From positions 310,001 to 374,000 of the forward strand of contig JAANOX010000271.1 in the NCBI GenBank assembly GCA_020184695.1: DNA of 64,000 bases. Reading direction: 5' to 3'. Below, piece by piece: positions 19,545 to 64,000 of this stretch; position 1 is the first letter of the stretch, and the number at the start of each line of letters is the position of its first letter. Below the pieces are notes generated by a model, which did no database searches, had not been told where the DNA came from, and worked only from the letters and a program-made list of their open reading frames with translations. The translations under genes and the position numbers were made by a program. The DNA comes from Histomonas meleagridis 2922-C6/04-290x (taxonomy: Eukaryota; Protista; Parabasalia).

Positions 19545-22500
19545 AGGTTGATTTTCTCAAAATCTTCTTATCAACAAATAGCAAACATACCAAGGGGAAG
19601 AACTCAGTGTTCTCCAAGTTATTCAATTCCATCAACTTGTGATATTCATAAACTCGATATTTACATTGAACAAGAAAAATTAATTTCTAATAACATTTCA
19701 TCAATATTTGAAATCACAATCAATAACGAAGATCCATATAATGCATTTAAGATATTGGTTGATGATGTTAAAAAAAGAAATTTAAAAAATTCTATCAAAT
19801 CCATTACGTTATCACCAAATAGGCCCAATACAATAATTATTGAATCTAATGATAAAAGTTCTTTTATGAGTTTAATTCAACATAACTTTGATTTTTCTGA
19901 AAATTTTCTTAGAAATGCAATTGATTTTGGTTCCTCTATTCGTTTTTTGAAGTTTCCTCCTGGTACTATAGTTAGAATTTATGGGAAAGAAGCAGGTCAA
20001 GTTGTTACTTCTGATGCAACAACTCAAAAAATTCTGGTAAAATATCTTCCATGCATTGATTATGAACAGCTCAAAACGTCGGAAATAAAGAGTCAAAAAT
20101 ATATTAACATGAAAATGCCAAGTGATTACAAACCTAAGAAAATTTATTTTGTAAAAAATTTTTTTATACGCTATAAAATCAAACTTGATGAAGAAGAAAT
20201 TCCAATTCCATATGCACACAATGGCGTCGCAAAAGCAATCAAGTGGGATGGTGATTTGTTTATTGGGATATTTCAATATTCATATTTTTCAATGGAAGAT
20301 TTACAAATTCAAAACTTAAACATAACTAAAGAAGAATATTCCATATTCGAAAATAATAGAGCTGATTTTGAAGGTCATGACCCAATTTTTAATGAAAATA
20401 TGAGGAAAACTAAAAAAACTTTTGAACAAAATAATTTCTCTTTATTGAATACTAGAAACGATTCAGAAGAAAAAATGAATCAAAATGAAAGTCATATTTC
20501 CGAAGCAAAGATAAAAGTGAATGAAGAAAATATTATAAAACCAAATATATTATGGCACTCACAAAATAACCAAGGAAAACCTGTACGAATAGAAAATTAT
20601 ATTAAAAAAGAAACACAAAAAAGTTTTTCACAACAAACAGAATTTGAACCAAAAGAACAGCAAAAGCCTCAAGCTAGAGAAAAAATAAATGAGAACAAAG
20701 AACAACAAATATCTCAAACAAGAAAAATAACGAATGATAACAAAGAAAAACAAAGAGTTCAATCAGAAAAAATAAGTGAAAACAAAGAACAACAAATATC
20801 GCAAACAAGAAAAATAACGAATGATAACAAAGAAAAACAGAGAGTTCAATCAGAAAAAATAAGTGAAAACAAAGAACAACAAATTTCACAAATAAGAAAT
20901 GCAATAAATGAAAATAGAGAACAACAAATATCTCAAATAATCGAAACAACAAATGAAAATAAAGAACAACGAATATCTCAAATAATCGAAATAATAAATG
21001 AAGACAAAGAAAAGCAAAGAGTTCTATTAGAAAAAGTAAATGAAAACAAGGAACAACAAATATTTCAACCAAGAGAAACAAATGAAGATAATGAGCGAGA
21101 AATTTCACAACAACACAGAGAAGAGTACACTCTTTATCATGTTCAAGCAAAAGCAAATACACAACAAAGGCATCAATCAAATAAAAATAATCAATGGCAA
21201 CAAATACCACAAATATTACATTCAGAACAAGAAATATCAAAGGAACAAATGTTACAGAGGCCACAAGCAGTACAAGAAACAGTGCAGCCACAAATACAAC
21301 AAATTCAACAAAAACCACAATCAAATAAAGATAATCAACAGCAACAACAAATGCCACAACTTCAATCAGCACAAGAACTGACACAACAATCAATGCAACA
21401 AAGGAACAAAGATGTACCTGAACAACAAATTCAAAAGAGATTGCAAGAGACACGAGAAATTCCACAACAACATAGAGAAGAATACACTCTTTATCATGTT
21501 CAAGCAAAATCAAATACACAACAAAAGCCACAAATAAATAAAGATATTCCACAAAAGCAACCAATGCAACAGAGACGACAATTAACTCATGATAACCAGC
21601 AACAACAAATGCCACAACTTCTATCAGTACAAGAACTGACACAACAAAGAAACAAAGATATAACTGAACAACAAATTCAAAAGAGATCGCAAGAAACACG
21701 AGAAATGCCACAACAACATAGAGAAGAATACACTCTTTACCATGTTCAAGCAGAAGCAAATACACATAAACTACAACCAGTACAGGAAACAGTGCTGCCA
21801 CAAATACAGCAAAGGATACACTCAAATAAAGATAATCAACAACAACAAATATCACATACAGAACATAAAATATCACAGCGGCAAATGCCACAAAAGCAAC
21901 AATCAAATAAAGATAATCAACAACAACCAATGCCACAAACATGTGAAGATATTTTATATCAACAACAAATTTCGCACACACTGTCTGAAGCATTACAACA
22001 ATTTCAAATTAATTCAAATGAAGAAGATCAAGCAGAAACAAGTTCAGAGCAAGCTCTCGAGAAGCTTATTGAGTATTGCAAAAATTCGAAAGATATCACA
22101 AAGTTACGTCATATATATAAAATACTAGATGAAATGAAACAACAACACGAGACACCACAACAAGAACAACCAAAACAAACTGAATTAAGACAACCAAAGT
22201 ATTGGCCGTATGATTTAGTTCGACTAAATTCTAATTTAGTTGGAACTGTTATTAATATAACTGAAACAGATGACACAATAATTCTACAAAACAATAGAAT
22301 CGAAACTGTTACTGAAGATAAAATTGTCAAAAAATTGTCTCCTCAGCCAAAAGTTATTGATTGTCACAAAACGCAATTATTTATTGGAGATAGAGTAAAA
22401 TTTAACGAAACAAAAGAAGGAAAAATCATTCAAATGTATAATAAACATCTCTACGTAGAATTACCAGATAACTCATTCCAATGTGTTCCTGCAAGATTGG

Positions 22501-22736
22501 TAGAGTCTTTGTCTCCTAAAAACCGAAGTTGTTCTGTGATTGGTGAAAAAATTATTTACATAAAAGGAAAACACGTTTACTCGAAACCGTTAAAAATTAC
22601 GGATGTTACAACGAGAAAAGGATTAACAGTAACTGATAATAGAGGAAACGAACGAAGTTTCCCATTGGAACTTCATGGAAAAAAGTGGGTATACGAAAAC
22701 GAATTTCAGTCTCTTTTAGAAAGTGGAGCGTTATAA
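19545..22736 (+). CDS. Divergent Spt5-like (NGN/KOW) protein with a large Gln-rich repeat insert; no ATG at the expected start
   Basis: PGTIVRI..GQV...D..ILVKYLPCIDY resembles Spt5 KOW1 (MIPRIDY); YDLVRL..VGTVI and IDCH...IGDRVK..EGKI resemble later KOW segments; AGG at 19545 where ATG is expected. Confidence 0.62.
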   Translation, partial: RLIFSKSSYQQIANIPRGRTQCSPSYSIPSTCDIHKLDIYIEQEKLISNNISSIFEITINNEDPYNAFKILVDDVKKRNLKNSIKSITLSPNRPNTIIIESNDKSSFMSLIQHNFDFSENFLRNAIDFGSSIRFLKFPPGTIVRIYGKEAGQVVTSDATTQKILVKYLPCIDYEQLKTSEIKSQKYINMKMPSDYKPKKIYFVKNFFIRYKIKLDEEEIPIPYAHNGVAKAIKWDGDLFIGIFQYSYFSMEDLQIQNLNITKEEYSIFENNRADFEGHDPIFNENMRKTKKTFEQNNFSLLNTRNDSEEKMNQNESHISEAKIKVNEENIIKPNILWHSQNNQGKPVRIENYIKKETQKSFSQQTEFEPKEQQKPQAREKINENKEQQISQTRKITNDNKEKQRVQSEKISENKEQQISQTRKITNDNKEKQRVQSEKISENKEQQISQIRNAINENREQQISQIIETTNENKEQRISQIIEIINEDKEKQRVLLEKVNENKEQQIFQPRETNEDNEREISQQHREEYTLYHVQAKANTQQRHQSNKNNQWQQIPQILHSEQEISKEQMLQRPQAVQETVQPQIQQIQQKPQSNKDNQQQQQMPQLQSAQELTQQSMQQRNKDVPEQQIQKRLQETREIPQQHREEYTLYHVQAKSNTQQKPQINKDIPQKQPMQQRRQLTHDNQQQQMPQLLSVQELTQQRNKDITEQQIQKRSQETREMPQQHREEYTLYHVQAEANTHKLQPVQETVLPQIQQRIHSNKDNQQQQISHTEHKISQRQMPQKQQSNKDNQQQPMPQTCEDILYQQQISHTLSEALQQFQINSNEEDQAETSSEQALEKLIEYCKNSKDITKLRHIYKILDEMKQQHETPQQEQPKQTELRQPKYWPYDLVRLNSNLVGTVINITETDDTIILQNNRIETVTEDKIVKKLSPQPKVIDCHKTQLFIGDRVKFNETKEGKIIQMYNKHLYVELPDNSFQCVPARLVESLSPKNRSCSVIGEKIIYIKGKHVYSKPLKITDVTTRKGLTVTDNRGNERSFPLELHGKKWVYENEFQSLLESGAL
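20690..21960 (+). repeat. Coding repeats in the Spt5-like gene: 87-nt (29-aa) tandem units and three QQHREEYTLYHVQA blocks
   Basis: AACAAAGAACAACAAAT at 20694, 20781 and 20868; QQHREEYTLYHVQA occurs three times in the translation. Confidence 0.9.
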
Positions 22737-23213: not shown

Positions 23214-24830
23214 TTACTTAGCCTCGAAGATGTAGCATGTTAATGCATCACAGTCTAAATTGAATCCACCGTTACCACTATATTCTTTGCCTGTGATCAA
23301 TTCCTTGAAGCTTGAGCCACCACAGTTCACGTAGACAGTTGTTGGCAATGTTCCTGTGTTTACAACGAACACAATTTTAGTTTGGGTTTGGTCATCCCAT
23401 TTGACATTAATTAGTGCGCCATCCTTTGTAGACACACTATTAGAACCTCTATACATTGCTGGATAGCTCAGACGTATATTCATTAACTTAGCCGTATAAT
23501 CGTGTAAATCTTGTTCATTAGTATTAAATCCGGAAATATGGCCATCTGTTCTCGCTACGTTATCACTAGCTGTACCATCACCACAGCCATAAGATTGCCA
23601 GCAATCTGCTATATCACCAACTTCATCTCCATAGTAAATAGTAATTGGTCCAGTATAAGCGGCCAAACAACCCAATGCGATCTTATAACGCTTCCAATAT
23701 GCTTCGTTACTTCTATCATAGCCATACTTACTACGGATCAAATTACCAAATCTCCATACATCATGATTCGTGATGAAAAGATTAGGATAAACATCAGATG
23801 AATATCCTTTTTCACTTGGCGTCTTAAATACATTGGTAAGTGTGCTAACTCCATAGCCTCCAGCGCCACTTTCTTCTTGCGCAATAACTTGGACAAGGTT
23901 GTAACGCGCTGGGAAGTCGAAGGCAGACTTAAGGCCGTCCTGTGAATATGTTTGTGATTGGATTTCACTTGTGCCGCTCCAATGTTCACCGACCATGTAA
24001 CCGAGCGTACCCCATTGTTTGCCTTGGTTCTTGCGTTCGTTACAAAGATCTTGAACTGCGGTACGGATTTCATACCAATAGTTGTGGTTGTTTTGGAATA
24101 ATTGATAACATTGATCAAGACGCCAACCATCAATTTCATACTCACGGATCCAATATAAGGCAACTTCCTTGTAAAATTCAAGGCTGCCTGGATAAGAAAC
24201 TGGATTACTGCTTCCTTGCGGATAATTGCCATTTGGTGATGCTTTAACATTGCCACCATGATGGCCGAAAACACCATCAAGGAAGATGTACATGCCACGG
24301 TCATGACAGCCTTTGATAAGATTACGAAGATCATCGTTGGTACCAAACTTTGGATCAACATTGAAATAATCAGTGGCAAAGTAACCTGTGGATTGAAGTT
24401 TTTCACCACCACTGCCGCCAGTGGAGTCGAAAACTGGTGTAAGCCAAAGAGCATTGACATTAAGACCTTTGATGTAATCAAGTGCATTAATAATACCCTT
24501 GAGATTTCCTTTGTGACTGCTTGGTCCATAACCAGTGCAATAGCATGTTGAACCATCGCCTTGGAATGATGAAACCATAACTTGGTAAATTGTAATTGAA
24601 TTAAAATCAGTGTTTAATCCATTTGATACTGAATTTGAGGAAGTACCAACTGTGTTAGTTGTTGTTGTGGTTGTTGATGTTTTATTGCTTCTAAATGAAA
24701 CAAAACCTATAACCATTCCAACGACTAAACCTATGCCAACACATAATGCAGCAATCCAATGCATCCTCCTACCCTTCTTTTTATCTTCTTGGTTTCTGGG
24801 AAGGAGAGGTTCGTTCTGGAACTCTTCCAT
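23214..24830 (-). CDS. GH13 alpha-amylase-family glycosidase, type II membrane-anchored
   Basis: GNLKGIINALDYIK, LWLTP, GY...DYFNVDPKFGT, DGVFGH, GWRLDQ, GEHW, ITNHD; N-terminal TM and Thr-rich stalk. Confidence 0.92.
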   Translation of the reverse strand: MEEFQNEPLLPRNQEDKKKGRRMHWIAALCVGIGLVVGMVIGFVSFRSNKTSTTTTTTNTVGTSSNSVSNGLNTDFNSITIYQVMVSSFQGDGSTCYCTGYGPSSHKGNLKGIINALDYIKGLNVNALWLTPVFDSTGGSGGEKLQSTGYFATDYFNVDPKFGTNDDLRNLIKGCHDRGMYIFLDGVFGHHGGNVKASPNGNYPQGSSNPVSYPGSLEFYKEVALYWIREYEIDGWRLDQCYQLFQNNHNYWYEIRTAVQDLCNERKNQGKQWGTLGYMVGEHWSGTSEIQSQTYSQDGLKSAFDFPARYNLVQVIAQEESGAGGYGVSTLTNVFKTPSEKGYSSDVYPNLFITNHDVWRFGNLIRSKYGYDRSNEAYWKRYKIALGCLAAYTGPITIYYGDEVGDIADCWQSYGCGDGTASDNVARTDGHISGFNTNEQDLHDYTAKLMNIRLSYPAMYRGSNSVSTKDGALINVKWDDQTQTKIVFVVNTGTLPTTVYVNCGGSSFKELITGKEYSGNGGFNLDCDALTCYIFEAK

Positions 24831-35250: not shown

Positions 35251-35544
35251 GGTAGTAAACCATTAGTTAACTTCATTAACACCTCAAAAGGTTTTCGATT
35301 TGTGATAAATTGCCACAAATAATCGTTGCTGAATGGGAATTTGTTGCAAGTTTATTATTTGAACCGAGTGAATATATCGTTTGTTCTTTTTATAAGGTTC
35401 CTGTAAAATTTGGACGACTTATTGTAGAAGAGGAATCTGAATTAAATTTTTCGTTTGTACTTTATATTTTTTTCACGAAGTAAATTTACTATTTCTATGT
35501 AACCTTTTTGCTGTGCAATTTGAGTCGCAGTAAAATATTGCTAA

Positions 35545-35740
35545 AACATATTTCAAATTATTAAAACATATTCCAAATTATTCAAATAAATAGTTTCTGC
35601 ATTAACATTAATTCCTCTTTATCTAAAAGTAATTTTGCTATTTCTATATTATTATTTTTAACTGCTATATGAAGTGCTGTTTCAAATTAAAAAAACATAT
35701 TACAAATTATTAAAACATATAAAAAATTATTAAAATAATT
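35545..35740 (-). pseudogene. Isolated ankyrin module (35592-35683, 1-nt deletion) flanked by 20-bp minisatellite spacers
   Basis: Minus strand ETALHIAVKNNNIEIAKLLLDK..; near-copy of 36591-36683. Confidence 0.8.

Positions 35741-36298: not shown

Positions 36299-36342
<44 letters not shown>
36299..36342. repeat. (TA)22 microsatellite
   Basis: Direct reading. Confidence 0.97.
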
Positions 36343-36345
<3 letters not shown>

Positions 36346-36481
36346 TTCCGGAAATTACTTTTTGTCCTTGGAAATAAATTAGGTAATGAGAAATTTTGAA
36401 TTTTTTCCAAAAAATCTTCGATTTTTTCAAGTAAACCTCAGAAAAACTAACGTACAAAATTTAACGATTCGAGTATATATT

Positions 36482-36590
36482 GAAAAATATTCTAAATTAT
36501 TAAAACATATTCCAAATTATTAAAACATATTTCAAATTATTAAAACATATTTCAAATTATTAAAACATATTTCAAATTATTAAAATGAAT
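36482..36590. repeat. 20-bp minisatellite (TTCAAATTATTAAAACATAT)n inside an ankyrin spacer
   Basis: About 5 tandem copies with minor variants. Confidence 0.9.
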
Positions 36591-37915
36591 AGTTTTTGCA
36601 TTAACATCAATTCCTTCTTTATCTAAAAGTAATTTTACTATTTCTATATTATTATTTCTAACTGCTATATGAAGTGCTGTTTCAAATTATTAAAACATAT
36701 TTCAAATTATTAAAATGAATAGTTTTTGCATTAACATCAATTCCTTTATCTAAAAGTAATTTTACTATTTCTATATTATTATTTCTAACTGCTATATGAA
36801 GTGCTGGATTATATTTTATAATAAAAATTTAAATCGTATTTTAAAATATCAAATTGTTTTAATGAAATTTCAATAAAATTTTCAAACACTTCTCTTTAAA
36901 TTAATATATTTATGATTAATAAGGTAGTTAAAAAATTCTTCCTTAATAGAAATCTCTGAAATCTCCAAAAAATTTAGTGAAATTTTATTATTTCCGAGGA
37001 AATATAAAAAAATAAAAATATTTCCTGTTTTAATAGAATTGATGATATGATTCTTATTGATAATCATTCCTTCTTCTTTTAAAAATGAAAGAAGATCAAA
37101 ATTATCATGTAAAATACATTCTTTTCCTAATTCTTCTAAATTATTATCAGGATTAATTTTATTTTCATAAAGGTATTTAAAGATATCATTTCGATGAAAC
37201 ATAATTGCTGTTTCATATGCATTTTCAAATGATGAATGATTTTGTTCACATAAATGAATGATTTCTTCATTCCCACCTGCAACAGCATATTTACCTGTGT
37301 TTATTACATTTGCTCCATTCATAAGTAAATATTTAAAACATTTAACTGAAGAAAAAAATGCTGCATAATCAATTAATGTAACATTTGGTTTGTTAATAAA
37401 TGAATATCTTTCATAAAGTGATGGTTCAATTATTTGATTAAAATTAAAATTTGTTTGTGATGACATTTCTTGAAGTTTTTTTACTTCATCATTACGAATT
37501 ATTGATGCGATTTTATTTGGATTGTGCCCATTCTTAACATATTTCTTATGAAGTTCAAAATTTTCAGAAAGATCTTTGAAATTATTTTTATTTTTGAATT
37601 TAATCCTTTGAGATTGCAGTTTTATGAATTCTTCTTCTGAAACATAATGTATATAAAAAGGATTATTTTTATTTTGAATAATTTTTTTGATTAGATTAAT
37701 TTACTTTCAATCATTTTTTCAAGAAGATAATTTGATTCTTCGTTATTAATTGATAACAAAAATTGAGTAACAACATTAATTAAGGTATTATTCGATTTTA
37801 TTTCTGCTTTCTGTAAATACTTGATGCATAATTTTTCAAATCCTTTAAAAACAAAATATGAATAAATAATTCGTGAAAAACCTGTACACAGACAACAAAA
37901 ATTCAGATAAATCAT
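36591..37915 (-). pseudogene. DUF3447/ankyrin gene, frameshifted near 37690, followed by spacer-separated ankyrin modules
   Basis: IEPSLYERYSFIN..TLIDYAAFFSSVKCFKYLLMN (DUF3447-type); upstream part in another frame; modules at 36721-36810 and 36591-36683. Confidence 0.8.
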
Positions 37916-44357: not shown

Positions 44358-47300
44358 TTACACCCACACGAAACTACCGAACCGTCCCATATTACAATTA
44401 TCGCAATTTTCTATCAGATGATTTACCAATTCGAACGGGAAATAGTTATCCATTTTATCAGTATCTTCTCCTACGTCTACCGCCAATTTTGTGATTTTCT
44501 CATCGAAAGAACTTTCGTCGATTTCCAAAGCCTTTAAATGTAATACGAATTCATTTTTCTTTTGGAACAATGCGTTTGCGATTGTATTCCACGTTGCAGT
44601 GAACGCTCCGTTCATTACGAACAAAGGCAAAAAAGCTTTAAATTGTGGAATCAAAGGCATATAACCATTCGCAATTCCATTTTTTATAAATCCTGGAAAA
44701 CAAAATCGTTTTCTATCTTTCATAATCATGAAATTAGAATATTGATACAAAACATTTTTGTTTTGACCGAAAATCAAATTAAATATTGAAGAAGAACTTA
44801 AATGTGATGCGAAACTTTGTCGCATGAATAAGAAATCTGTTTTATTACCATTACAACCTTTAATGAACCAATTAATAAAGAGATTTCTTGGTGAATCGAT
44901 TAAATGTTTCTCATAAAATGATTTTGGTGAGATATCTTTTGTTAATGAATCATCAAATGCATTTTTTAATAATGAATTTATATCAAAAGGTTTTATAATG
45001 TTTTGTAATGATTTTATTGGTGGTGAAAACATCATTAAAATCGAAGGATGAATTAAAAATGATTTAGGATAAAATACAAATGGATTCCTCGTGATAGAAC
45101 TTGGGAATTTCTTAAGACAATGATCAATAATATTTGCTAATAAATATTCATTTTGTGCATATTGATATAATTTAGATGAAACTAAATTATAAATTTGGAA
45201 TTTCCCAGTCGAAAAAAAACATTTCATTTTAGCTTCTTTAGTACCATCTGCAATTAAATATGATTTTATAATTCGATTTGATGATTTAGGCATATTAATA
45301 CCATTTAATGAGAAATATTTTTCATTTTTACTAATTTTATATTCGGTCATAAAATAGGGTGGGTTTGCCTGGCAGAATTCGTAAAGTTCTGAATTTTCGA
45401 TGTTATTATAAATCGAATTATAATATTGAATAATAGCATCGACTGAATTATCAAGTTTTTGGATATCATTTTTACATTTATTTATGAAACTAAAGAATAT
45501 TTCGAATTCTTTTTGTATATTAGAGTTAATATTTAAGATTATATTATTAATTTCTTTAATTACGTTTAAATTTTGTTGATTATTTTTTATCATTTGATTC
45601 CGAATATGATTAAAAGTTAATAAAAACAAAGTTGGATTTGACTTAAAAATGTTTTGGATGAAAGTTGTTGGTATTTCTAATGAAGCGTTTAATATATATT
45701 TAATCCACGGTATTAATATATATTTATTTGTTTTATTTAAATGATTTAATTGTGAACAAAACGTGTTCGCAAATAATGGATTCTTTCGAATTAATATTAA
45801 TATCATTGATATATAAATGTTATCATATTTCGATGTCGTATCATTTAATTCATCTAAAAGATATAAAATGATTTTAGTTTGATCATGTTCAATAATATCT
45901 TCTTCTTTTAATTGTATTAATATAGTTAGCCATTGTTTTTTAGTGAATTTATTATTAGAAAGTTCATAAGCATATTGATAATTACATAAAAATATCGATA
46001 AGTTAATACGTAATAAATTATATAAATTTGAATTTTCGGGTTTTTTTAAGAATTTATATATTCGTTTTAATGATATATTATTAATTGGAATTGTTTTATA
46101 TTCTTTTGTTGACTTTTGATATTGGATTAAACCTTCTTTAATACATCCAACTTGTATTAAAAGTTTTGACATTAAATTTTGATTTTGTTGAATCATTTCA
46201 TTAATTTCAGGTTTTAATAAGTTTAAAACTTGATTATTATTGATTAACATATAATCATTAAATATTTTATTTTGTAATATAATTCTCGATAAAATAATTT
46301 CATTTTTATCAAGAGTTTTCATTAATTGAAATTTATTTTTATGTATAATATCTTTAATATTAATGTTTTGTTGATTATAAACTTTTATCATATCTAAAAT
46401 TTCAGTATTAATAATTTGTTTGTTTACTATAGGTAAAAAAGTTTGAGAAACAAATGATGTTAATTGACTATTTGATTTAGAAGGTATATCATGAGAAATA
46501 GGTAATAACACTTGTGTAATATTTGATTTCGGATGTTCAAATATTAATTCATTTATGTTATCATATATCGAAAGTTCTTGATTATTTACTATGTTTCGAA
46601 GTTTTAATAATATTAAAAAATATATATCTTCATCATAAAGATTATCAAAGTAATACCCTTTCGATATAGAATAATTAGAAATTTGATGAAATAAAACGGC
46701 GTTTGTTAAATTCGGATGTTCTGTTTTAAAGATACCTAAGGAATCTTCCCATAAGTTTAAGTCTTCAAGATATTTCATGTTTTTATATAAGTTTAATTGT
46801 GGATATGGGACTTGATTTATATATTCAGGAAAATTAGTAAAACAATCAGAAAGTGTTGAATTTGGAAATTGATGAATATAATAATTGACAAAATTATTTA
46901 TATTCATATTAACCAAATAACTTAAATTTAATGTTATGAATTTCTTTAAATTTTGTTCATCGATATCATATAATAAAAAATGTATTGTTTCGGGTAAAAA
47001 AAGTTTTAAAAAGATATGTGAATGAATTCGTTCTGGTTGAGAAAACCAATCGAAAGTAAATAAATCATTTATTATATTATTACTTGTAGTAATTGTTAAT
47101 ATTTTTGTGATGGAATAATTTGATAATAATTCTTTATTGGTATAATTCATTAAAATTTTATGTATATATTTATTCATAGGAAATTTAATATGATTTAAAT
47201 CTAAAATAATTTCTTCTTCATTAAATGGAAAAAATGCTTCAAGAATTATTAAAATTTTATTAATGATTTTAAACTCATATTCATTCTCATTTAACCAATT

Positions 47301-50300
47301 TGATAAAGTAGCTAATGATGAAGAAGTTATAATATTACTTAATTCTTTATTATTTTCATCTTTAAAATATGACTTTAAATCTTTTAAAATTATATTTGAA
47401 AAATAAAATCGATTTAAATTTATGATAATTTTTAATGAGTTTTTATATTCTTCATTAAATTCTTCTGTTATATTCGATTTAAAAAAATTAGAAGGTAATA
47501 TAAGTGATGGAATAAAAGGTTTTAATTGTTGAAAAAAAGGTTTTAATAACAAAATAATTTTAATAAGAATTTCAGTTTTAATTTGTATTATTGGTTGTTT
47601 ATCATTAAATTTTTCTTCTAACTTCTCTATTAATTGTTTAATAATATCAAAAAATATATTATAATCTTCTTCTTTAATTATTACTAATAATTTCTTTATA
47701 ATTAAAGGAATGTTTTTCATTAAAATTAATATGTCAATATCAGATTGATTAAAAAAACTAATTAAAATTTTCAAAAATATTTCAAATAATTTATAATTAG
47801 TTTTAATATTATTATTATTTTCTGGTTGATATTTATCAAATATATTAAAAAACAATGAAATTATTTGTTTTTGATATTTAATTTTTAAAGATTTATTTAA
47901 AAACATTTTTACATAAATATTAATTAAATATTTTAAAAAGTCATTAACTGTTTTATATGTTAATAATTCCAATATATTTAATGTTTGTTTCATAAAATAT
48001 GGTCTATTAACTAATAAATTTATTAAAGTTTCTTTCATTTGTAAAGGGAATTCAACATTTGTAAAGTTAATTATATGTTTTGATATATTACAATATCGAA
48101 TAATACTTTGTACACCAGAAATTGAAGTAATTCCATAAAATAAACTTAACGCACTTGCTTTAGATGATGAAAAGATTAATGGCGAAGCATTTAAGTCAGA
48201 AACAACTACATTTTTATTATATCCTAAACTAGCCGATAAATAATGTATTACAAAATCAGTAAAAATATCACTTCGATGATATTTAGTAAAACCAGTTTGA
48301 AAATCGATTTTTTCTTTTGGTGGAAATTTCTTAAATCGTTCATTAAATATATTTAAGATAAATATTCTTGTAGATACTGATATTGTATCTAATAATAAAT
48401 TCGACTTTAATAAGTCATAAATTTTATTAATTTTATCAGTCTCTAACATAGATATAAATAAAATAAAATGTTTAATGAATTCGGGATAATTAAATAAGTT
48501 GTTTGAATGTAATAATATTGTTAAAAGTTCATTATAAAGATAACCAAAAAGATCATTATCTAAATTAAATAAATCATAATAATTTAATGGTAATAATGAA
48601 TTAGAAATATCATTTAATAAACTTGGCTTATATATAGTACGAATATTTTTCCTAAAAATTAATAAAAACTTTTTAACTAAATTATATAAATTATTAAAAT
48701 CAAATTCATTTCGATTTAAGTTATTTAAAATAGTTGAAAAAATCGAAAAAAATCCGGATAATATAAAATCGAAATATTGATTTTTTAAATCCAAATTTAA
48801 TTCTTGTTCTAAAAGATGTTTTATAAAGATGTTTCTAAATTGAATACATTCTGGATGAGTAATAATTTTTTTTAATAATATTAATAAATCGTTTGAAAAA
48901 TCTAATTTTATTCTATTAAAAAATACTTCATATAATTCATTTGGTGCTATTACACCTATTATATAAATTGGAACATCTAATAACAATGGAATTTGCATAA
49001 TTTTTAAATGGAAATCAATAATTGTTAAACATAATTGATGTAATTCAATGTTTTGATCTTTTTTATGTATAATTTTGATGATTTTATATAAAATTGTAAT
49101 ACATTTTTGTATAATAGTTCTAGAAACTCTTGAATTTCTAAATTGTTCATATATCATATTAATAGTTTTAATGACCCATTCTATATGTTTTATATATTTA
49201 TCAGAATAAGTTGATTTAATAATGAATTTTAATATTAATAAATCTTCAGGCGGTATCATTTGTAATGAATTATCTAAAAATACTTCATACTTTATAGCAA
49301 ATTCTTGTGGTATTGAAGGATAACCTAAAAATTCTTTTTCCTTCTTAAGTTTTTTTAAAAAATATGGAACAAATTGAAACATTTTTTCTTGATGAAGTTT
49401 AGCCATAATATTACCCCATAATTGATTTGATTCATTCGGTAAAAAAATTAATAATTTCGAAAATAATTTTAAGATAAATTTAATTGTGAAATATGAATTT
49501 AATTTAGGATCATAAAAATCTGAAAGTTTTATAAATTGTTGAATTTCTTCGGAATAAATTGATACTTGTAAACTCGTCATTAATTTTAATAATTGTGTAA
49601 TTAATAATGTAGGATCACCAATATCATTAAATGATTGTATAAATAAAAACTCATATTTAAAACTTGGAAATTTGGTTAATATTTTTGGTAATTGTGGAAT
49701 TATTGATTTCCGTGTTTCTTCAAAATCACTTTTAACTCCACAATTTACTTCGCAAAATTTTATTGTCTTTAATGCTATATGTCGAATAGTTCTTTGAGGA
49801 GAAATTGCTAATTTAACAAATGCTCTATAAATTTTTTGTACTGTTTTTTTATTATAATTCCTATTAAATATATGTCTTTTAAATATATCTAATACAAATT
49901 CATAATATGTTTGACAATAAAATGTTAAAGTTTTTAATAAATGTATAAATATTATACAATTTGTAGATACTTTATCAATACAAAATTCGATTGTTTGTAA
50001 TACAGAATATATTAATCTTGGATGAAATGACATCGTTTTAGTTATATATTTCATGAAATTAATGATATCTATATCTTCAATATTTTCGATGATTGAAGTT
50101 CCATATTTTTGTTTTATTAATAAAAATGCATATTGTTGTGGTGGGTTTGTAAATTTAATTGATTCATTTAGAAATGAATCATCGAAATTATTTAAATATC
50201 TAAAAATTTTTATAACATATTCATCGTTAACTAATTTCTCGAATTTATATTTCGTAATATAATTCATAATATAATGAAAAAAACTTTTTAATTGTTCTAT

Positions 50301-51734
50301 TGTTGGGTTTTCTATTCTTTTAATTGCACGAAATAATATCTCTATATCTATATTTAAGTTTTCATTTTCTGGTTGAATCTCTTCATATATATTTAAATGT
50401 GATACATTATCAATTGTCGTTAAAGGATATTTAACAAATAAATCAGGACATTTATCAATTAAAGGTTTTTTTACACTTGTTTTCTCTTTTAATACCGCAA
50501 CAACAAATCTTTTTTTTATAGGTTCTTTAAGTAAATAAATCCCTTGAAAAAACTCTGCAGGAAATTCACTTAAAAGTTGTATTGTTGCATATTTATAACG
50601 TGGTGATTCAAGTATCGGAAAAAACAAATTTATCCAAATTTTTATTGATTCGTTTTTATGTTTAAATAATTGATAAAAACGTATAGCAATAAATGATATA
50701 CTTGAAGTTAAAAATTGTATTTTAATTAATGATTGGAAAATATTTGATAAAGAAAATGATAAATTCTCTAATGCATTAACTAAATCTTTAGACTGATGTA
50801 AATTAGCATGAATTTTCAAAAAAAGTCTTAAAATAAAATAATCCAATAAATTAAAACTTTTTGTTTTAAAACATAACATTATTAACTTAACTAAATATGG
50901 AACAAATTCTTGTGGAATCGCATTATATTTCTTATAAACTTCTTGAACAATAAATAACATTAAATTCCCAATGATTTCAATAGCTTCAAATTTCATCATC
51001 GAATCGAATTCTTCAGTAATTATTTTAAAAAAATTTAGAAAATATATTTGACTTGGAATCATTTTAATTAATAAATTATTAATATGTGAATGATATACTT
51101 GATTTTTATCTTGTGGAAACAATAATTTAAAATTCGAAATCAATAAAAAATTAATAACTTCAGGTTTTTGTTGTGAGAAAACAGAAGAAACAAAAATTTG
51201 TATGAAATTAAGGATTTTCCGATGAAACAAATTATTATCAATGTTTTCTTGTATATAACAAACCAATTTATCTGTTGAATCATTTGATTTCCGGACATTT
51301 CCTGCTATATCTAATATATATGATATATATTTAATTAATCGTTCAATTATTTCATTTTCTTTATGTAAAGATGAAATATTTGGATAATTGTTATTGCCAG
51401 GATTTAAAATCCATTGTATTATCTTTAATAATGTTATGTTATTATCTATCCATGTTTCAATATTAAATCCTTTTTCTAAATCAATTTCTTCTAATTCATT
51501 TTTCATGTTCTCAAAACATCGAACAAATTGTTCAAATAATTCTAATTGTAATATACAACATTGTTGATAAACAATTCCATTTACAAAATGTTTATACGCT
51601 TCGAATATGCAATTAAAAATTCGAGGAGGCTGTTTAAAGTCACTTAAAAATGCACAAAAATTGGGTGAAATAGATTTAAAAAAAATATGTGGTGAATCAG
51701 GATTAGTTATTAAGATTTTAACAAATGATTCCAT
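44358..51734 (-). CDS. TRRAP/Tra1-like PIKK pseudokinase (main ORF)
   Basis: 2458-aa helical solenoid ending in a PIKK-like domain (FLFMRQSFASHL) without DxxxxN/DFG, and a FATC-like tail ending FVWV. Confidence 0.68.
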   Translation of the reverse strand: MESFVKILITNPDSPHIFFKSISPNFCAFLSDFKQPPRIFNCIFEAYKHFVNGIVYQQCCILQLELFEQFVRCFENMKNELEEIDLEKGFNIETWIDNNITLLKIIQWILNPGNNNYPNISSLHKENEIIERLIKYISYILDIAGNVRKSNDSTDKLVCYIQENIDNNLFHRKILNFIQIFVSSVFSQQKPEVINFLLISNFKLLFPQDKNQVYHSHINNLLIKMIPSQIYFLNFFKIITEEFDSMMKFEAIEIIGNLMLFIVQEVYKKYNAIPQEFVPYLVKLIMLCFKTKSFNLLDYFILRLFLKIHANLHQSKDLVNALENLSFSLSNIFQSLIKIQFLTSSISFIAIRFYQLFKHKNESIKIWINLFFPILESPRYKYATIQLLSEFPAEFFQGIYLLKEPIKKRFVVAVLKEKTSVKKPLIDKCPDLFVKYPLTTIDNVSHLNIYEEIQPENENLNIDIEILFRAIKRIENPTIEQLKSFFHYIMNYITKYKFEKLVNDEYVIKIFRYLNNFDDSFLNESIKFTNPPQQYAFLLIKQKYGTSIIENIEDIDIINFMKYITKTMSFHPRLIYSVLQTIEFCIDKVSTNCIIFIHLLKTLTFYCQTYYEFVLDIFKRHIFNRNYNKKTVQKIYRAFVKLAISPQRTIRHIALKTIKFCEVNCGVKSDFEETRKSIIPQLPKILTKFPSFKYEFLFIQSFNDIGDPTLLITQLLKLMTSLQVSIYSEEIQQFIKLSDFYDPKLNSYFTIKFILKLFSKLLIFLPNESNQLWGNIMAKLHQEKMFQFVPYFLKKLKKEKEFLGYPSIPQEFAIKYEVFLDNSLQMIPPEDLLILKFIIKSTYSDKYIKHIEWVIKTINMIYEQFRNSRVSRTIIQKCITILYKIIKIIHKKDQNIELHQLCLTIIDFHLKIMQIPLLLDVPIYIIGVIAPNELYEVFFNRIKLDFSNDLLILLKKIITHPECIQFRNIFIKHLLEQELNLDLKNQYFDFILSGFFSIFSTILNNLNRNEFDFNNLYNLVKKFLLIFRKNIRTIYKPSLLNDISNSLLPLNYYDLFNLDNDLFGYLYNELLTILLHSNNLFNYPEFIKHFILFISMLETDKINKIYDLLKSNLLLDTISVSTRIFILNIFNERFKKFPPKEKIDFQTGFTKYHRSDIFTDFVIHYLSASLGYNKNVVVSDLNASPLIFSSSKASALSLFYGITSISGVQSIIRYCNISKHIINFTNVEFPLQMKETLINLLVNRPYFMKQTLNILELLTYKTVNDFLKYLINIYVKMFLNKSLKIKYQKQIISLFFNIFDKYQPENNNNIKTNYKLFEIFLKILISFFNQSDIDILILMKNIPLIIKKLLVIIKEEDYNIFFDIIKQLIEKLEEKFNDKQPIIQIKTEILIKIILLLKPFFQQLKPFIPSLILPSNFFKSNITEEFNEEYKNSLKIIINLNRFYFSNIILKDLKSYFKDENNKELSNIITSSSLATLSNWLNENEYEFKIINKILIILEAFFPFNEEEIILDLNHIKFPMNKYIHKILMNYTNKELLSNYSITKILTITTSNNIINDLFTFDWFSQPERIHSHIFLKLFLPETIHFLLYDIDEQNLKKFITLNLSYLVNMNINNFVNYYIHQFPNSTLSDCFTNFPEYINQVPYPQLNLYKNMKYLEDLNLWEDSLGIFKTEHPNLTNAVLFHQISNYSISKGYYFDNLYDEDIYFLILLKLRNIVNNQELSIYDNINELIFEHPKSNITQVLLPISHDIPSKSNSQLTSFVSQTFLPIVNKQIINTEILDMIKVYNQQNINIKDIIHKNKFQLMKTLDKNEIILSRIILQNKIFNDYMLINNNQVLNLLKPEINEMIQQNQNLMSKLLIQVGCIKEGLIQYQKSTKEYKTIPINNISLKRIYKFLKKPENSNLYNLLRINLSIFLCNYQYAYELSNNKFTKKQWLTILIQLKEEDIIEHDQTKIILYLLDELNDTTSKYDNIYISMILILIRKNPLFANTFCSQLNHLNKTNKYILIPWIKYILNASLEIPTTFIQNIFKSNPTLFLLTFNHIRNQMIKNNQQNLNVIKEINNIILNINSNIQKEFEIFFSFINKCKNDIQKLDNSVDAIIQYYNSIYNNIENSELYEFCQANPPYFMTEYKISKNEKYFSLNGINMPKSSNRIIKSYLIADGTKEAKMKCFFSTGKFQIYNLVSSKLYQYAQNEYLLANIIDHCLKKFPSSITRNPFVFYPKSFLIHPSILMMFSPPIKSLQNIIKPFDINSLLKNAFDDSLTKDISPKSFYEKHLIDSPRNLFINWFIKGCNGNKTDFLFMRQSFASHLSSSSIFNLIFGQNKNVLYQYSNFMIMKDRKRFCFPGFIKNGIANGYMPLIPQFKAFLPLFVMNGAFTATWNTIANALFQKKNEFVLHLKALEIDESSFDEKITKLAVDVGEDTDKMDNYFPFELVNHLIENCDNCNMGRFGSFVWV

Positions 51735-52644
51735 TAATAAAATCGTTCGCTTCTTTTGAACAAATGGATCTAAATAAAAATATTGATATATGGATAAAAG
51801 TCTTCCTAAAATATTGGCTATTAATGGATCGTTTATATGAAATATTTGGGATTTTCATGATTGAACATATACAACGATAATAATTTTGTATAATATGTAT
51901 GAACCTTAAATCTTCTGGAATTGATTTCTGAACTTTACCCAAAAGTGACGTTTGAAGTGGAGTTGTTTGACGGTTTTTCGTGATGAGCTTCGAGATTAAT
52001 TTTAATGATTTGGAAATAATTATCTCTGTTTTTTGAAATATTGTGACATCGTTTTTAAATTGAAGACCTCCAAGTGAAATATAAAGGAAAACATCGATTA
52101 AATTAGATATATAATCAAATGTAGCATTTGAAATATGATATGGAATAATTCTTATAAGAAGTAATATAAGCTGTAAATCAGAGGCCTGAATCGACTTTGA
52201 AGATTCTCGTAAAAAAAGAAGGATTTGATTTAAAAATTTTGGATAAAGATTTGGTTCGCCATGTGTTGATGTTAAAAAATGATCACTGAGAAATATAAAA
52301 GCTTGAATACGAGTAGCCCAATGTCTTGAAGTTAAGAAATTAAAGACAAGTGGCTCTAAAACGCTTGAAGTTTGAACATTAAAAAAACTTGGTCGAAGAA
52401 AACGCATGGAATAAATAAGATGCGACTGCAGTACTAACTCAACTTCCGATAGTATGTTATGATTTTGGACATATCGAGTAAGATAAGTATTATATAAAGA
52501 AAAGATGTTTGGATAATGTCCTAATAATTGTGATTCCAAACTAAAAACTAACAAATCTTCCATATTTTTTATCAAATCATTGGTGAGAATTGGTAGTTCA
52601 TTGCTCTCAAATAAACGAAAAACTTGATTACCATTTAGTTCCAT
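51718..52644 (-). CDS. Probable N-terminal part of the TRRAP-like gene, separated by one frameshift
   Basis: 308-aa helical ORF overlapping the next ATG; the downstream frame is open from about 51854. Confidence 0.6.
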   Translation of the reverse strand: MELNGNQVFRLFESNELPILTNDLIKNMEDLLVFSLESQLLGHYPNIFSLYNTYLTRYVQNHNILSEVELVLQSHLIYSMRFLRPSFFNVQTSSVLEPLVFNFLTSRHWATRIQAFIFLSDHFLTSTHGEPNLYPKFLNQILLFLRESSKSIQASDLQLILLLIRIIPYHISNATFDYISNLIDVFLYISLGGLQFKNDVTIFQKTEIIISKSLKLISKLITKNRQTTPLQTSLLGKVQKSIPEDLRFIHIIQNYYRCICSIMKIPNISYKRSINSQYFRKTFIHISIFLFRSICSKEANDFINGIIC

Positions 52645-53344
52645 TTGGAATGAAAACCGTTTATTTTTTATTCACTTTTTTGGAGAAACTTTTCTCCATA
52701 AATTGAAACGTGTTTAGGCTGAAGCTTGAATGATTTCTGCAAATAAAAAATTTTGTCATAAAAACCTTCGACTCTAACTTTTAAAAAATGATTTTAGAAA
52801 ATAATTTTTATGAAAAAGTTGAAATATCTAATGGGACATTATCTTCTTTCGCCTGAACAACGAGAAAATTGGTATTTATGCATTAATAATGATATCAACA
52901 GAATATACAGATTTACAACAAATTGGAACTCTAGCAAATGAATATGGTGATGATTGTTTCAAGAATCATATGTTATACGGAATTCCTTGCAAACATTTAT
53001 TAATTAAGAGAACGTAAGAAGATAAAATTCCTTAGTTAACATTGAATGACTCTCACCCTAGATGGATCAGTTCTATTAATACTTTTATCAACACTAAAAA
53101 CACAATTGAAATAATTAAAAAACAAAAAATAGATTCGAACGACTGGAGCTATTCTTCATGTATAGATAAACCCGAAAGGAATTTTACCTTTGTTGCTCGA
53201 TCCCAAATAATCATTATTCTTCGAAGAATCTTAAGTGGAGCTCTGAATACTTTAAATTGTGTAGAATACGAATCTGGAATGAACGAAGATATTTTACCTC
53301 TTTCAACATTTTTAATCACAGGAACGCCAAATCTCACCCAAGAA

Positions 53345-54463
53345 GAAATGATATCTTTCATTATATTTATGAGAATAAAATTATTATACTAAATAATATA
53401 GAAGAACTAGGAAAAAGATGTATCTTAAATTATAAGAATGAAATTCTTTCATTTCTCGAAAAAGAAGGTATGAAAATAAACAAATTTTTTATTAATAAGT
53501 TAATGGAAACTGGAAACACATTCCTTTTACAATATTTCCTTGAAAAAAGTACAGATTCATATGATTTTTGGGATATTTCAACCATTTCTATAAATGATGA
53601 ACCATTTAAATACTTGGTTGATGAAAAAATTATTAAAACTAATAAAAAAGTGATGATTTAATATATTTCGCATTTATTTTTTTGATTTCCTATTTCAACA
53701 TAATATTTGGTATTTATTTTAAACATTTAAAACACTAATTATGTATGCATTCGAAAAAGGAATAACCAAATTAGTTGAATTACTTCTCGAACAAGAAGGA
53801 ATTGATGTTAATGTAAAAGATATATATTTGTTCTGTTTCAAATTTGTTTTAAATATTTTGGTTCTCAAAATAATATTTGGTAATTGTTTAAATGATTTAA
53901 TACGGCACTTATTTTGGCATCAGAAAGAAATCGTCCAGAAATAGTTAAATTGCTTCTTAAACAAAAAGGTATTAATATTAATGCTAAAGATTTTTATTAA
54001 ATGCAATTAAAATTTATCATAATATTTTGATATTTTTAAGTAATTACTGGAAATTATTTGAATTGTTTTATACAGCTCTCATATATGCATCTGAAAAAGG
54101 TTTCACATAAATAGCTAAATTGCTTCTTGATCATGAAGGAATTGATGTTGATGCAAAAAATATTTATTTATTATAGTTAATATTTATTTGAATAGTTCAA
54201 AATTTCAAAATAATATTTGGAATTTATATATGTTATTTATTACAGCACTTATATATGCAACTAAGTATTGTAATAAAGAAATATTTAAATTACTTCTTAA
54301 GTGTAAAGGTATTAATTTTAATTGTAAGAAATAATTGTTTATTTCATTTAAAATACATTTTAATAACTTGATTTTTCAAAATAATATATGGAAATAATTC
54401 AAATTATTTAGAACAGCACTTTTTTATGCATCCGAGAATGGTTACACAGAATTTGTCAAATGA
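53345..54463 (+). pseudogene. DUF3447/ankyrin gene fragment plus an array of five ankyrin modules with 77-79-nt spacers
   Basis: RNDIFHYIYEN..ELGK..EGMKIN matches the paralogs; modules start at 53729, 53899, 54069, 54239 and 54410; stops at 54108 and 54461. Confidence 0.85.
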
Positions 54464-55093
54464 CTTCATATGTAAAAAAGAAAATGATCATATACGAAGG
54501 GCAGGAACGTTTTTATTTGTGTTTCTTTGAAAACGAATCACTATAATAAAATGCATCAAAAAATTTGAAATTTATTTTTGATCAAAATTGATGAAACCTT
54601 TTTTTGGAATTAAATATATATTTCTAATGATCATACATGATATATTTGGCACTAAAGCTAAACAAATATGTTCTTTTTGAATTGAAATGCAAATTAGTGT
54701 TACATTTTTTTTAATTAATTTTTTATGCATGCTATTTACTAACTCATTCTCGAAATCAAAAATTTACTGACATAAAAAAATGCTTTGCTGATCTTTTTAT
54801 ATCTCATTGAGAAGAAAAAAACGTTTTGATTTTTTGGAACGTTCCAAAGAACGTTGGCAACGTTGTTAGGGGGGGGGTATCCAACGATATCGAATTCAAT
54901 GCATCTCTATTCAATTCCTTTTGTTAAAATTCTGACAATTGAATTTTGAGATCAACAGGAAATAATTTCATTTTTGAATGGCTTTTTTCAATATAGATTC
55001 CCGGTTCTGGATTATCAGTTCGGCCAAACTCCCCTCAGAAAAAACGCTATAATTTGCATTCAATTTTTCAATTCAAACATATCATTAGGATTT

Positions 55094-62663: not shown

Positions 62664-63833
62664 ATGATAAACCAGAATCAGGATGAATGGGAAACATTTT
62701 TATCAATCAGACAAATAATTTTTAATTTAAACTCAAAAAATCTTGTTCAATCAATTAATTCCATAGCTAATAAATTTGACAATATTTATCCATTATCTTT
62801 TAATACAGTTATCATTCAAATGATATATATCAAACTTGTTACGAACATTAATGATATTGATATATACTTAGAATTTCTTAAAGGAATTGAAGCATTTGAA
62901 GAAAACCATAAAATCGAATCAAAAATCCTTCGAATGTTTTCACGTTTTCTTGATAAAAAGTCCTCATACGAATCATTTTATATCATGAATAAGATGAATG
63001 AACAAAATATTCTTGATTCAAAATATATTAAAAATTTGATCAAACCTAAAAATCCTTATTATTATGATTCTTTTTATGTAAAAATTGTAGAAAATGATTT
63101 TGAGCTTCATAAAAAATATGTTAAAGAAGGACATAATCCAAATAAAATTGCACAAATTATTCGAAATGATGAAATAGAAAAACTTCAAGAAATATTATCA
63201 CAAAATGGTTTTGATATCAATCAGACTATCAAACCATCACTTTATGAAAGATGTTCATTTATTAACCATTCGAATGTCTCGTTAATTGATTATGCAGCAT
63301 TTTTTTCAGCAGTTAAATGTTTTAGATATTTACTTATGAATAATGCTAATATAAAAAACACAGGAAAATATGCAATTGCAGGTGGAAATTTAGAGATAAT
63401 TCATTTATGTGAACAAAATCATTTATCATTTGAAGAAGCATCTGAAACTGCAATTCAATTTCATAAAAATGATATCTTTTATTATCTTTATGAAAACAAT
63501 ATCAAAGAAATTAAAACATTAGAAAAATTAGGAAGTAAATGTGTTTTATATTATAACTATGAAATTTTAACATTTTTAAAAGAGAAGGGAATGCAGATTA
63601 ATGATGAAATCATTAATTCATCAGCACAACTTGGAAATTTATATCTTACGAAACATTTCCTTCAAAACAAACAAATCCCAAAAAATATATTATATTACTC
63701 ATTCGATTCTAAAAACATTGAATTTTTTAAATATATTTTGAAACAAGAAGGAATTGATATTAATGCTGAAACTATTTATTTGAAATATATGAAATTTATT
63801 TTAATAATTTGGTTTGAATATAATTTATTTTGA
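62664..63833 (+). CDS. DUF3447-type ankyrin-repeat protein; the ORF runs into a spacer and stops
   Basis: GHNPNKIAQIIRNDEI, IKPSLYERCSFIN, SLIDYAAFFSAVKCFRYLL, QEGIDINA. Confidence 0.88.
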   Translation: MINQNQDEWETFLSIRQIIFNLNSKNLVQSINSIANKFDNIYPLSFNTVIIQMIYIKLVTNINDIDIYLEFLKGIEAFEENHKIESKILRMFSRFLDKKSSYESFYIMNKMNEQNILDSKYIKNLIKPKNPYYYDSFYVKIVENDFELHKKYVKEGHNPNKIAQIIRNDEIEKLQEILSQNGFDINQTIKPSLYERCSFINHSNVSLIDYAAFFSAVKCFRYLLMNNANIKNTGKYAIAGGNLEIIHLCEQNHLSFEEASETAIQFHKNDIFYYLYENNIKEIKTLEKLGSKCVLYYNYEILTFLKEKGMQINDEIINSSAQLGNLYLTKHFLQNKQIPKNILYYSFDSKNIEFFKYILKQEGIDINAETIYLKYMKFILIIWFEYNLF

Positions 63834-63879
63834 TGTTTTGATGTTTTAAAATAATATTTGGAAATTATTAAAATTATTT

Positions 63880-63972
63880 AAAACAGCACTTATGAAAGCT
63901 TCTATAAATGGTGATACAAAAATAGTCAAATTACTTCTTGAACAAGAAGGAATTGATATTAATCATAAAAAT
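63880..63972 (+). other. Out-of-frame ankyrin module between two spacers
   Basis: KTALMKASINGDTKIVKLLLEQEGIDINHKN (31 codons); the next spacer starts at 63973 and is cut by the window edge. Confidence 0.85.
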
Positions 63973-64000
63973 ATTTATTTGTTTTATTTAATATTGATTT

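Follow-up and report, generated by a model that had tools for sequence, protein, structure and literature searches.

Trichomonad type B introns are 23-28 nucleotides (nt) long, with GTWYWD at the 5′ end and TCTAACH(1-2)AACAG at the 3′ end (PMC12316389, PMC6260720). The Trichomonas intron papers describe canonical introns only, the T. vaginalis intron pipeline drops junctions without canonical motifs (PMC12316389), and the genome paper of Histomonas meleagridis lists 5.2-5.7% of the genes with at most one predicted intron (PMC8529796). Here we analyse a stretch of 64,000 nt from H. meleagridis 2922-C6/04-290x (assembly GCA_020184695.1, contig JAANOX010000271.1, positions 310,001 to 374,000 of the forward strand; the window in what follows), which contains at 53650-54463 an array of ankyrin modules separated by T-rich spacers. 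We show that these spacers encode a four-residue beta-turn linker (x-x-G-x) in four single codons, each preceded by a phase-0 T-rich element of exactly 17 nt. No description of such a layout was found in the literature on introns of Histomonas, Tritrichomonas, Dientamoeba and Parabasalia, on ultrashort introns or on microexons, and the intact members of this ankyrin family represent a gene layout without known precedent.

Reading the spacers in units of 17+3 nucleotides

The array consists of five copies with start-to-start spacings of 170, 170, 170 and 171 nt and an identity of 62-71% by repeat search, and its ankyrin translations are those given in the initial annotation of this stretch. By the convention used there the spacers are indeed 77, 77, 77 and 78 nt long; if the count runs from the final D/N codon up to the T codon of TAL, the lengths become 80, 80, 80 and 81 nt. 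The 170-nt period is made up of a 90-nt ankyrin module and an 80-nt linker, and the linker falls into four tandem 20-nt units, each composed of a 17-nt T-rich element that starts with RTTTRT and one codon. Within an 80-nt linker the codons that would be kept, each standing alone, thus occupy nt 18-20, 38-40, 58-60 and 78-80. Neither this 20-nt periodicity nor the presence in the window of two further genes of the same build, one on the minus strand at ~37.6-35.44 kb and one from 62664 to the window end, had been noted in the initial annotation. The element consensus derived from 98 copies is 5′-RTTTRTTTWAATWATTT-3′, or position by position R, T, T, T, R, T, T, T, W, A, A, T, W, A, T, T, T. There is almost no C or G after position 5, and positions 9-17 read WAATWATTT with C at no more than 5%.

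All 31 modules tested, from the window and from related loci, match the Pfam Ank family PF00023 (best E = 6.5e-9). Pfam Ank covers the module over profile positions 4-32 of 33, meaning that exactly four residues are missing per repeat, and the four kept codons would fill these residual positions and put Gly where it is expected; a linker of four residues is also what generic LLxxxGIDVN-type ankyrins possess. The triplets at nt 18-20 contain no stop codon in any of 98 units as compared to 43 of 98 at the neighbouring offset, and the kept triplets that begin with T (n = 18) are TAT, TGG, TTT or TCN, all of them sense codons. We derived a scoring matrix from 306 linkers found in unrelated ankyrin proteins and applied it to the four triplets at each of 18 offsets: offset 18 obtained +140.5 bits while every other offset remained at or below -81.7 bits. 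Of 19 spacers, 12 have Gly at linker position 3, versus 1 of 57 at the other positions (Fisher p = 2e-8), and this Gly is specified by the synonymous codons GGA, GGT and GGG. Other linkers formed by the kept codons are NLGQ, KSDQ, KIDS and NNGK in Histomonas and HDGS in the metagenome contig L001 of ENA, and a dynamic-programming parse recovered modules that had been missed by the pattern search, flanked by the linkers RLGK, KDGC, NSGN and NHGK. Conservation of the modules at the protein level, as claimed initially, is borne out by a divergence of 0.40, 0.22 and 0.46 at codon positions 1, 2 and 3, with position 2 the most conserved.

The initial annotation had also pointed to a TGG that begins 21 nt before each 93-nt module and to a shared spacer motif, and had taken them for a recognition signal within an intron. 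The TGG is present at all four positions (starting at 53878, 54048, 54218 and 54389), and the motif, TCAAAATAATATTTGGAA, is over-represented, with 9 matches in the window at up to 3 mismatches versus 1.63 expected, four of them within the array and one at 63846 in the second gene. The role assigned to them does not hold, since they arise where the final T of an element meets the Gly codon of the beta-turn.

The constancy of spacer length goes far beyond chance: 16 diverged spacers with their flanks, taken from the window, from Histomonas and from two metagenome contigs, form a 100-column alignment with zero gaps. Across all loci we have seen linkers of 12, 23, 26, 40, 60, 63, 80 (the majority), 83, 100, 140, 180 and 280 nt, and all these lengths are covered by L = 17m + 3c, with m elements and c codons. 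The number of units per linker is 2, 3, 4, 5, 7, 9 or 14, and such head-to-tail copies of varying number are those of a minisatellite; this label accounts for the multiplication of the units, not for their removal. In agreement with the earlier statement that the array cannot be translated as it stands, stops in all usable frames are frequent in the spacers, and 21 of 39 Histomonas-type spacers are unreadable even with one frameshift. These unreadable spacers lie inside otherwise open arrays, so something must remove or skip them.

The key for reading the Histomonas-type spacers as 80 = 4 x (17 + 3) is provided by JGI contigs of a more distant parabasalid-like eukaryote (L005-L030; Ga0074193, Ga0209639; up to 178 kb, 33% GC), where linkers measure 12 nt (59 junctions scored, 58 deduplicated), 29 nt (29 scored, 28 deduplicated) or 46 nt (3 junctions), that is 12+17m. 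In these contigs a 17-nt insert is found at about one third of the ankyrin junctions, and three junctions have 34 nt. By a likelihood scan the 17-nt insert falls between the second and third codons of the linker, directly before the Gly codon. The third element of Histomonas-type linkers lies at the same site, which suggests that this position is old and shared and that the elements may later have spread from it by unit duplication.

The open reading frame (ORF) encoding the N-terminal domain has homologs among H. meleagridis proteins called 'caskin' and in ~20 ENA metagenome proteins, and nearly all of the predicted products stop in the first spacer, with the ending ...GIDINAKDI*. Three genes of a second H. 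meleagridis genome assembled from long and short reads (GCA_020186115.1, contig WSYJ01000186.1) share the layout, as do ENA metagenome contigs, two of which have spacers of 80 and 83 nt, the same length class. In the first Histomonas gene a 506-codon N-terminal ORF is followed by three full modules and a fourth repeat, every separation being exactly 80 nt, and the fourth repeat runs in frame into a 505-codon ORF annotated as a separate gene. The second, unannotated gene has linkers of 280, 180, 140, 100 and ~63 nt and a capping repeat at its end. The third has a 475-codon N-terminal ORF and then at least 20 modules, none containing a stop, with linkers of 60, 81, 80, 26, 83, 80, 80, 80, 80, 26, 83, 63, 80 ... 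80, 23 nt. At these loci (L003, 10001-13614 and 4323-6706; L004, 16222-21266) the public annotation stops one gene at the first element, the annotated 505-residue 'gene' begins at an ATG inside the last linker, and two further array-bearing genes have no public gene model at all. One junction in the contig L001 is devoid of any element and shows a plain 12-nt linker, which fits a loss via a processed copy. A profile search with the module alignment returned generic giant ankyrins only. In Tritrichomonas foetus MLAK01000907.1 (L031, 11696-12860), downstream of TRFO_31612, ankyrin modules lie between T-rich spacers of 32-250 nt with GTTTT-type starts; with the Histomonas-type matrix these T. foetus spacers gave no convincing 17+3 parse.

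Possible routes of expression

Non-canonical RNA excision had been one of three mechanisms proposed for this array and is still the best of them, although the unit of excision was misread. We put about even weight on each 17-nt element being an individually excised non-canonical micro-intron, with one-codon exons in between. Every element would be removed from the pre-mRNA, the likeliest agent being a spliceosome-derived machinery that sets the 3′ cut by distance and not by an AG, which would explain the rigid length of the element. Such an agent could also explain why the 5′ end of the element resembles the GTWYWD donor of the trichomonad type B introns. Since a 20-nt unit would net 3 nt after removal, slippage could add or remove units and leave the frame intact, which would make loop length evolvable, and loops of 2 to 14 residues are seen. 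The same 17+3 design would account for the young run of five units at 36.5 kb, and four units give the canonical four-residue turn, which could be the reason why four-unit linkers are by far the commonest.

A number of observations weigh against this excision model. Where a spliceosome would expect GT, 57 of the 98 elements begin with A, 34 with G and 7 with T; at the other end the last three positions are T in 81-93% (final base 93%), and G is found at neither of the last two. The branch and 3′ motif RCTAACACAYAG or TCTAACH(1-2)AACAG is absent from the 98 elements, as is any CTAAC-like site. The elements are restricted to ankyrin linkers instead of occurring gene-wide, which is unusual for introns. 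To our knowledge, no spliceosome excises introns without both GT and AG at 17 nt, and there is no precedent for one-codon exons between 17-nt introns. Two protein searches found no spliced products in the protein databases. Junctions of 81 and 64 nt have no clean 17m+3c fit, and one of 97 nt has poor element scores. T-rich elements with TAAA-like strings could, by analogy with Trichomonas, serve as polyadenylation signals.

Canonical introns can be set aside on several counts. The ends typical of trichomonad introns (GT at the 5′ and AG at the 3′ end) were not found in the 98 elements, no register of GT..AG, AT..AC or shifted-boundary readings yields canonical ends, and the initial annotation was correct in stating that no GT..AG pair restores the frame. 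Canonical trichomonad introns measure 23-196 nt, without multiple introns per transcript, versus 17 nt, four per linker and dozens per gene in the present case. The U12-type donor RTATCCTT and branch TCCTTRAC are absent, the element consensus being RTTTRTTT..., and no Rfam family is matched by the element. In favour of the 17+3 reading, pairs of elements in 20-nt phase cluster in ankyrin arrays only and, in two Histomonas loci, on the coding strand only. Among other long ORFs, junctions that the removal of 17 nt could mend are not in excess. The flanking codons are not duplicated as would be expected from direct-repeat or target-site-duplication footprints, and identity between element position 1 and the first base of the next codon is not significant (p = 0.1).

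If each spacer were instead removed as a single non-canonical intron of ~68-77 nt, with the inner triplets as untranslated splicing signals or relics, no one-codon exons would be required, and both the conserved spacer ends (RTTTRT start, TTT end) and the prevalence of the 80-nt length would be in keeping with this. We nevertheless find it quite improbable. The inner triplets fit an independent linker profile at one offset only, contain no stops and use synonymous Gly codons, removal of 77 nt would leave a 31-residue repeat where Pfam shows four residues missing, relatives have a lone 17-nt insert with two ordinary codons on each side, and spacers of 23 and 26 nt occur. The bases ATT TAT..TTT (I Y / F) that the initial annotation would have kept from one 68-77-nt unit belong to the inserts. 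Keeping 9 or 12 contiguous end bases (I+Fx, I+[LIM]Fx) conflicts with the TAA found at -9..-7 in many spacers and with one 26-nt spacer whose last 6 nt include a stop. The elements might also stay in the mRNA, the ribosome coping with them by a -1 frameshift per element or by a 17-nt hop. Here it speaks in favour that 17 and 20 are both 2 mod 3, such that one -1 slip per element mends the frame, that a single slip makes 90 of 98 elements readable and that many elements end in AAT TTR, reminiscent of a slippery site. However, 90 of 98 is what chance predicts (89.8 of 98), the eight unreadable elements sit in otherwise intact genes, a gene with at least 20 modules would require ~60 or more obligatory slips, and read-through would add 28 hydrophobic residues to each loop. 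The features of programmed -1 frameshifting, two open frames and a slippery heptamer with a structure, were not found, nor were matched take-off and landing triplets, as the elements end in TTT regardless of the preceding codon; 0 pairs and no conserved hairpin are predicted. Decoding by the ribosome, including the bypassing suggested initially, consequently appears very unlikely to us. One frameshift per spacer is ruled out by the 21 unreadable spacers mentioned above, and stop-triggered +1 shifting (Euplotes-like, Euglena-unrelated), worked out by hand on one Histomonas spacer, gives the wrong net shift.

Just as doubtful is the view that the arrays are unexpressed past the first element, only the N-terminal domain being made and the modules representing debris or a gene-conversion reservoir. 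Public gene models do end in ...KDI*, the flagged copy in the window is decaying and the T-rich elements might terminate transcripts. This is difficult to reconcile with ~30 stop-free Histomonas modules, when at this composition ~7% per module would be open by chance, with the constraint on codon position 2, with linker codons that are kept as ankyrin linkers, and with arrays that close in proper capping repeats or in the in-frame 505-codon ORF. A somewhat better candidate, though still improbable, is a non-spliceosomal, length-measuring activity acting on RNA (endonuclease plus ligase, or deletion-type editing), or programmed DNA elimination. The lack of GT-AG and of a branch motif, the exact length and the very restricted location would all suit it, but RNAalifold predicts 0 consensus pairs in the 16 aligned spacers with flanks, hence no conserved structure such as the bulge-helix-bulge of tRNA endonuclease or the twin stem-loops of IRE1-type enzymes, and the elements are not pure U tracts. 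We know of neither nuclear dimorphism nor DNA elimination in parabasalids. The elements are bounded by RT...T, in contrast to the TA...TA of ciliate-type internal eliminated sequences, and they are present in every assembly seen, including independent short-read metagenome contigs and the genome assembled from long and short reads, which disfavours elimination at the DNA level. A DNA cassette assembly like that of VLR genes had been suggested as well; nothing was found for it, the arrays follow an N-terminal ORF, and a normal C-terminal end is reached by the minus-strand copy in the window and by two of the three arrays in Histomonas.

Beyond the individual micro-intron, a wider proposition would be that the elements are excised or skipped by a length-measuring mechanism other than the standard spliceosome, that this mode of expression is new for the Histomonas lineage and at least one distant lineage, and that the 20-nt minisatellite acts as a frame-neutral generator of loop length on the ankyrin binding face. 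Taken as a whole we regard it as rather unlikely.

The copies in the window

The array at 53650-54463 is a 5′-truncated, decaying member of the family, i.e. a pseudogene, as the initial annotation had suspected from the stops in modules 3 and 5, both of which are present. Its status follows from the partial N-terminal domain, the two in-module stops, the surplus base in module 4 and the out-of-register first spacer. The domain remnant covers only the part that matches residues 267-371 of the paralog starting at 62664, which are the last ~105 residues of the N-terminal domain. The surplus base in module 4 explains why the fourth spacer is counted as 78 instead of 77 nt by the earlier convention, and 54332-54412, taken as an 81-nt linker, cannot be parsed into elements and codons. 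For linker 2 a reading K-T-G-Y is also permitted by the score-based parse. Past the truncated module 5, where family similarity stops a few bases after the TGA, the sequence at 54470-54900, which includes a G9 run near 54863, has no relation to the family.

Table 1. Features of the interleaved ankyrin genes in the window, with the codons that would be retained in each linker.
Feature	Position	Strand	17-nt elements	Codons retained	Basis or remark
N-terminal (DUF3447-type) domain remnant	53341..53655	+			tblastn of 62664-63833 product against the window; ORF list
First linker, degenerate, 82 nt instead of 80, out of register	53650..53731	+	53712-53728 (one strong element)	GGT 53709-53711 before, AAA 53729-53731 after the element	dynamic-programming parse with element matrix
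Ankyrin module 1, 30 codons, TLIMYAFEKG...DVNVKD	53732..53821	+			
Interleaved linker 1	53822..53901	+	53822-53838, 53842-53858, 53862-53878, 53882-53898	CAA 53839-41, TGG 53859-61, GGT 53879-81, AAT 53899-901 (Q W G N)	
Ankyrin module 2 (TALILASERNRPEIVKLLLKQKGININAKD)	53902..53991	+			Pfam Ank positions 4-32 of 33
Interleaved linker 2	53992..54071	+	53992-54008, 54012-54028, 54032-54048, 54052-54068	AAA 54009-11, GAT 54029-31, GGA 54049-51, TAT 54069-71 (K D G Y)	
Ankyrin module 3	54072..54161	+			broken by in-frame TAA 54108-54110
Interleaved linker 3	54162..54241	+	54162-54178, 54182-54198, 54202-54218, 54222-54238	AAT 54179-81, AAA 54199-201, GGA 54219-21, ATT 54239-41 (N K G I)	
Ankyrin module 4	54242..54332	+			one surplus base near the 3′ end, frame break
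Interleaved linker 4	54333..54412	+	54333-54349, 54353-54369, 54373-54389, 54393-54409	AAA 54350-52, GAT 54370-72, GGA 54390-92, AGA 54410-12 (K D G R)	
Ankyrin module 5, truncated	54413..54470	+			TGA 54461-54463
Apparently intact paralog, N-terminal ORF (DUF3447 and first ankyrin-like repeat) ending ...GIDINAET	62664..63773	+			
First interleaved linker of 62664 paralog, 109 nt	63774..63882	+	5 elements	8 codons (E G L N I D G K)	
Intact module (63883-63972) and linker start of 62664 paralog	63883..64000	+	63973-63989	AAT 63990-92	
Minus-strand paralog, first linker, 80 nt	36808..36887	-		K D K N	
Minus-strand paralog, two near-identical modules (36807-36721, 36680-36591), 40-nt linker, five near-identical 20-nt units	36470..36807	-	2 units in the 40-nt linker	E E	
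Minus-strand paralog, distal part: 20-nt units, module 35680-35592, 60-nt linker	35442..35740	-	3 units in the 60-nt linker		

The paralog at 62664 extends beyond the window end, and the product of 62664-63833 matches PF11929 (E = 4e-9 by Pfam), which places it in the DUF3447-ankyrin family of parabasalids. The distal part of the minus-strand paralog closes with a terminal capping ankyrin repeat and a stop at 35444-35442. Tandem repeats in this paralog have periods of 20 at 95% identity and of 127 at 97%; Tandem Repeats Finder reports 5.4 copies of period 20 at 36478-36585 with 95% identity. At ~36.5 kb the unit of element and codon has recently been multiplied into a run of five. A (TA)22 run at 36299-36342 adjoins these five near-identical units, and ~700 nt of unrelated sequence between the two parts of the gene suggest an insertion or rearrangement there.

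The window as a whole is AT-rich (17-35% GC) and has long uninterrupted ORFs. The product of 23214-24830, an alpha-amylase, shares 85% identity with an H. meleagridis protein and 59-65% with Trichomonas and Tritrichomonas proteins. The ORF at 19548-22736 (1062 codons, no Pfam match) has imperfect tandem repeats at 20652-21081 with periods of 45, 87, 132 and 177 nt. Two ORFs on the minus strand, 44358-51734 (2458 codons, without a Pfam match) and 51718-52644 (308 codons), overlap by 17 nt in different frames, like one split very large gene. One 17-nt element does not account for this overlap, because the frame relation requires a deletion of 1 mod 3.

Implications and relation to known systems

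Common aligners treat gaps of under ~21 nt as deletions, and standard RNA sequencing pipelines would miss 17-nt elements by design. The canonical-motif filter of the T. vaginalis pipeline means that elements of this kind would likewise have escaped notice (PMC12316389). If they are removed from RNA, a large gene family is at present annotated in truncated or split form. The recognition range of the reduced parabasalid spliceosome, or of some other machinery, would then need revision. The 17+3 arithmetic would offer gut and tissue parasites a simple route to rapid in-frame variation in ankyrin loop length, and if the elements could be removed singly or jointly, several loop variants might come from one gene.

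Among the described systems the type B introns share most with the elements reported here: they belong to the same phylum, are very short, length-constrained and AT-rich, element positions 2-6 (TTTRT) fit their donor motif before a T at +7 and +8, and an A-rich stretch ~6 nt before the 3′ end of the element lies where type B introns have their branch motif. In contrast to them, the element more often has A than G at +1, has neither AG nor CTAAC, measures 17 nt versus at least 23, and occurs by the dozen in tandem per gene and only in ankyrin linkers, whereas Trichomonas has no multiple introns per transcript. In U12-type (AT-AC) introns the 3′ cut is determined by distance from the branch site and non-AG ends are tolerated; A or G at +1 is common to these and to the element, but their defining donor and branch motifs are missing here and U12 introns are not so short. 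Euglenid non-conventional and Fritillaria non-canonical introns are likewise nuclear and without GT-AG, with variable and much greater lengths. The euglenid ones rely on end-to-end pairing, and none is predicted for our elements.

Bypass elements, as in phage T4 gene 60 or the byps of Magnusiomyces mitochondria, combine matched take-off and landing codons with a hairpin in inserts of 27-55 nt. The elements resemble them as short inserts of non-3n length within ORFs that are, here presumably, absent from the protein; the matched codons, the hairpin and the variable length are not seen in the 17-nt elements. In animal recursive splicing and around 3-nt microexons, a new donor is placed right behind a very short exon after excision, which is what one-codon exons would call for, but all known cases involve long introns and canonical sites rather than tandem 17-nt units. 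Ultrashort introns are found in Stentor (15-16 nt) and in chlorarachniophyte nucleomorphs (18-21 nt), and the Histomonas elements share with them lengths that vary little and lie close to the physical minimum for splicing. Those introns keep GT-AG, occur across all genes and have ordinary exons in between. Provided that the 17-nt elements are indeed taken out of the RNA, they would rank with the shortest known intervening sequences, close to those of Stentor but without GT-AG, and would be the first to be separated by one-codon exons.

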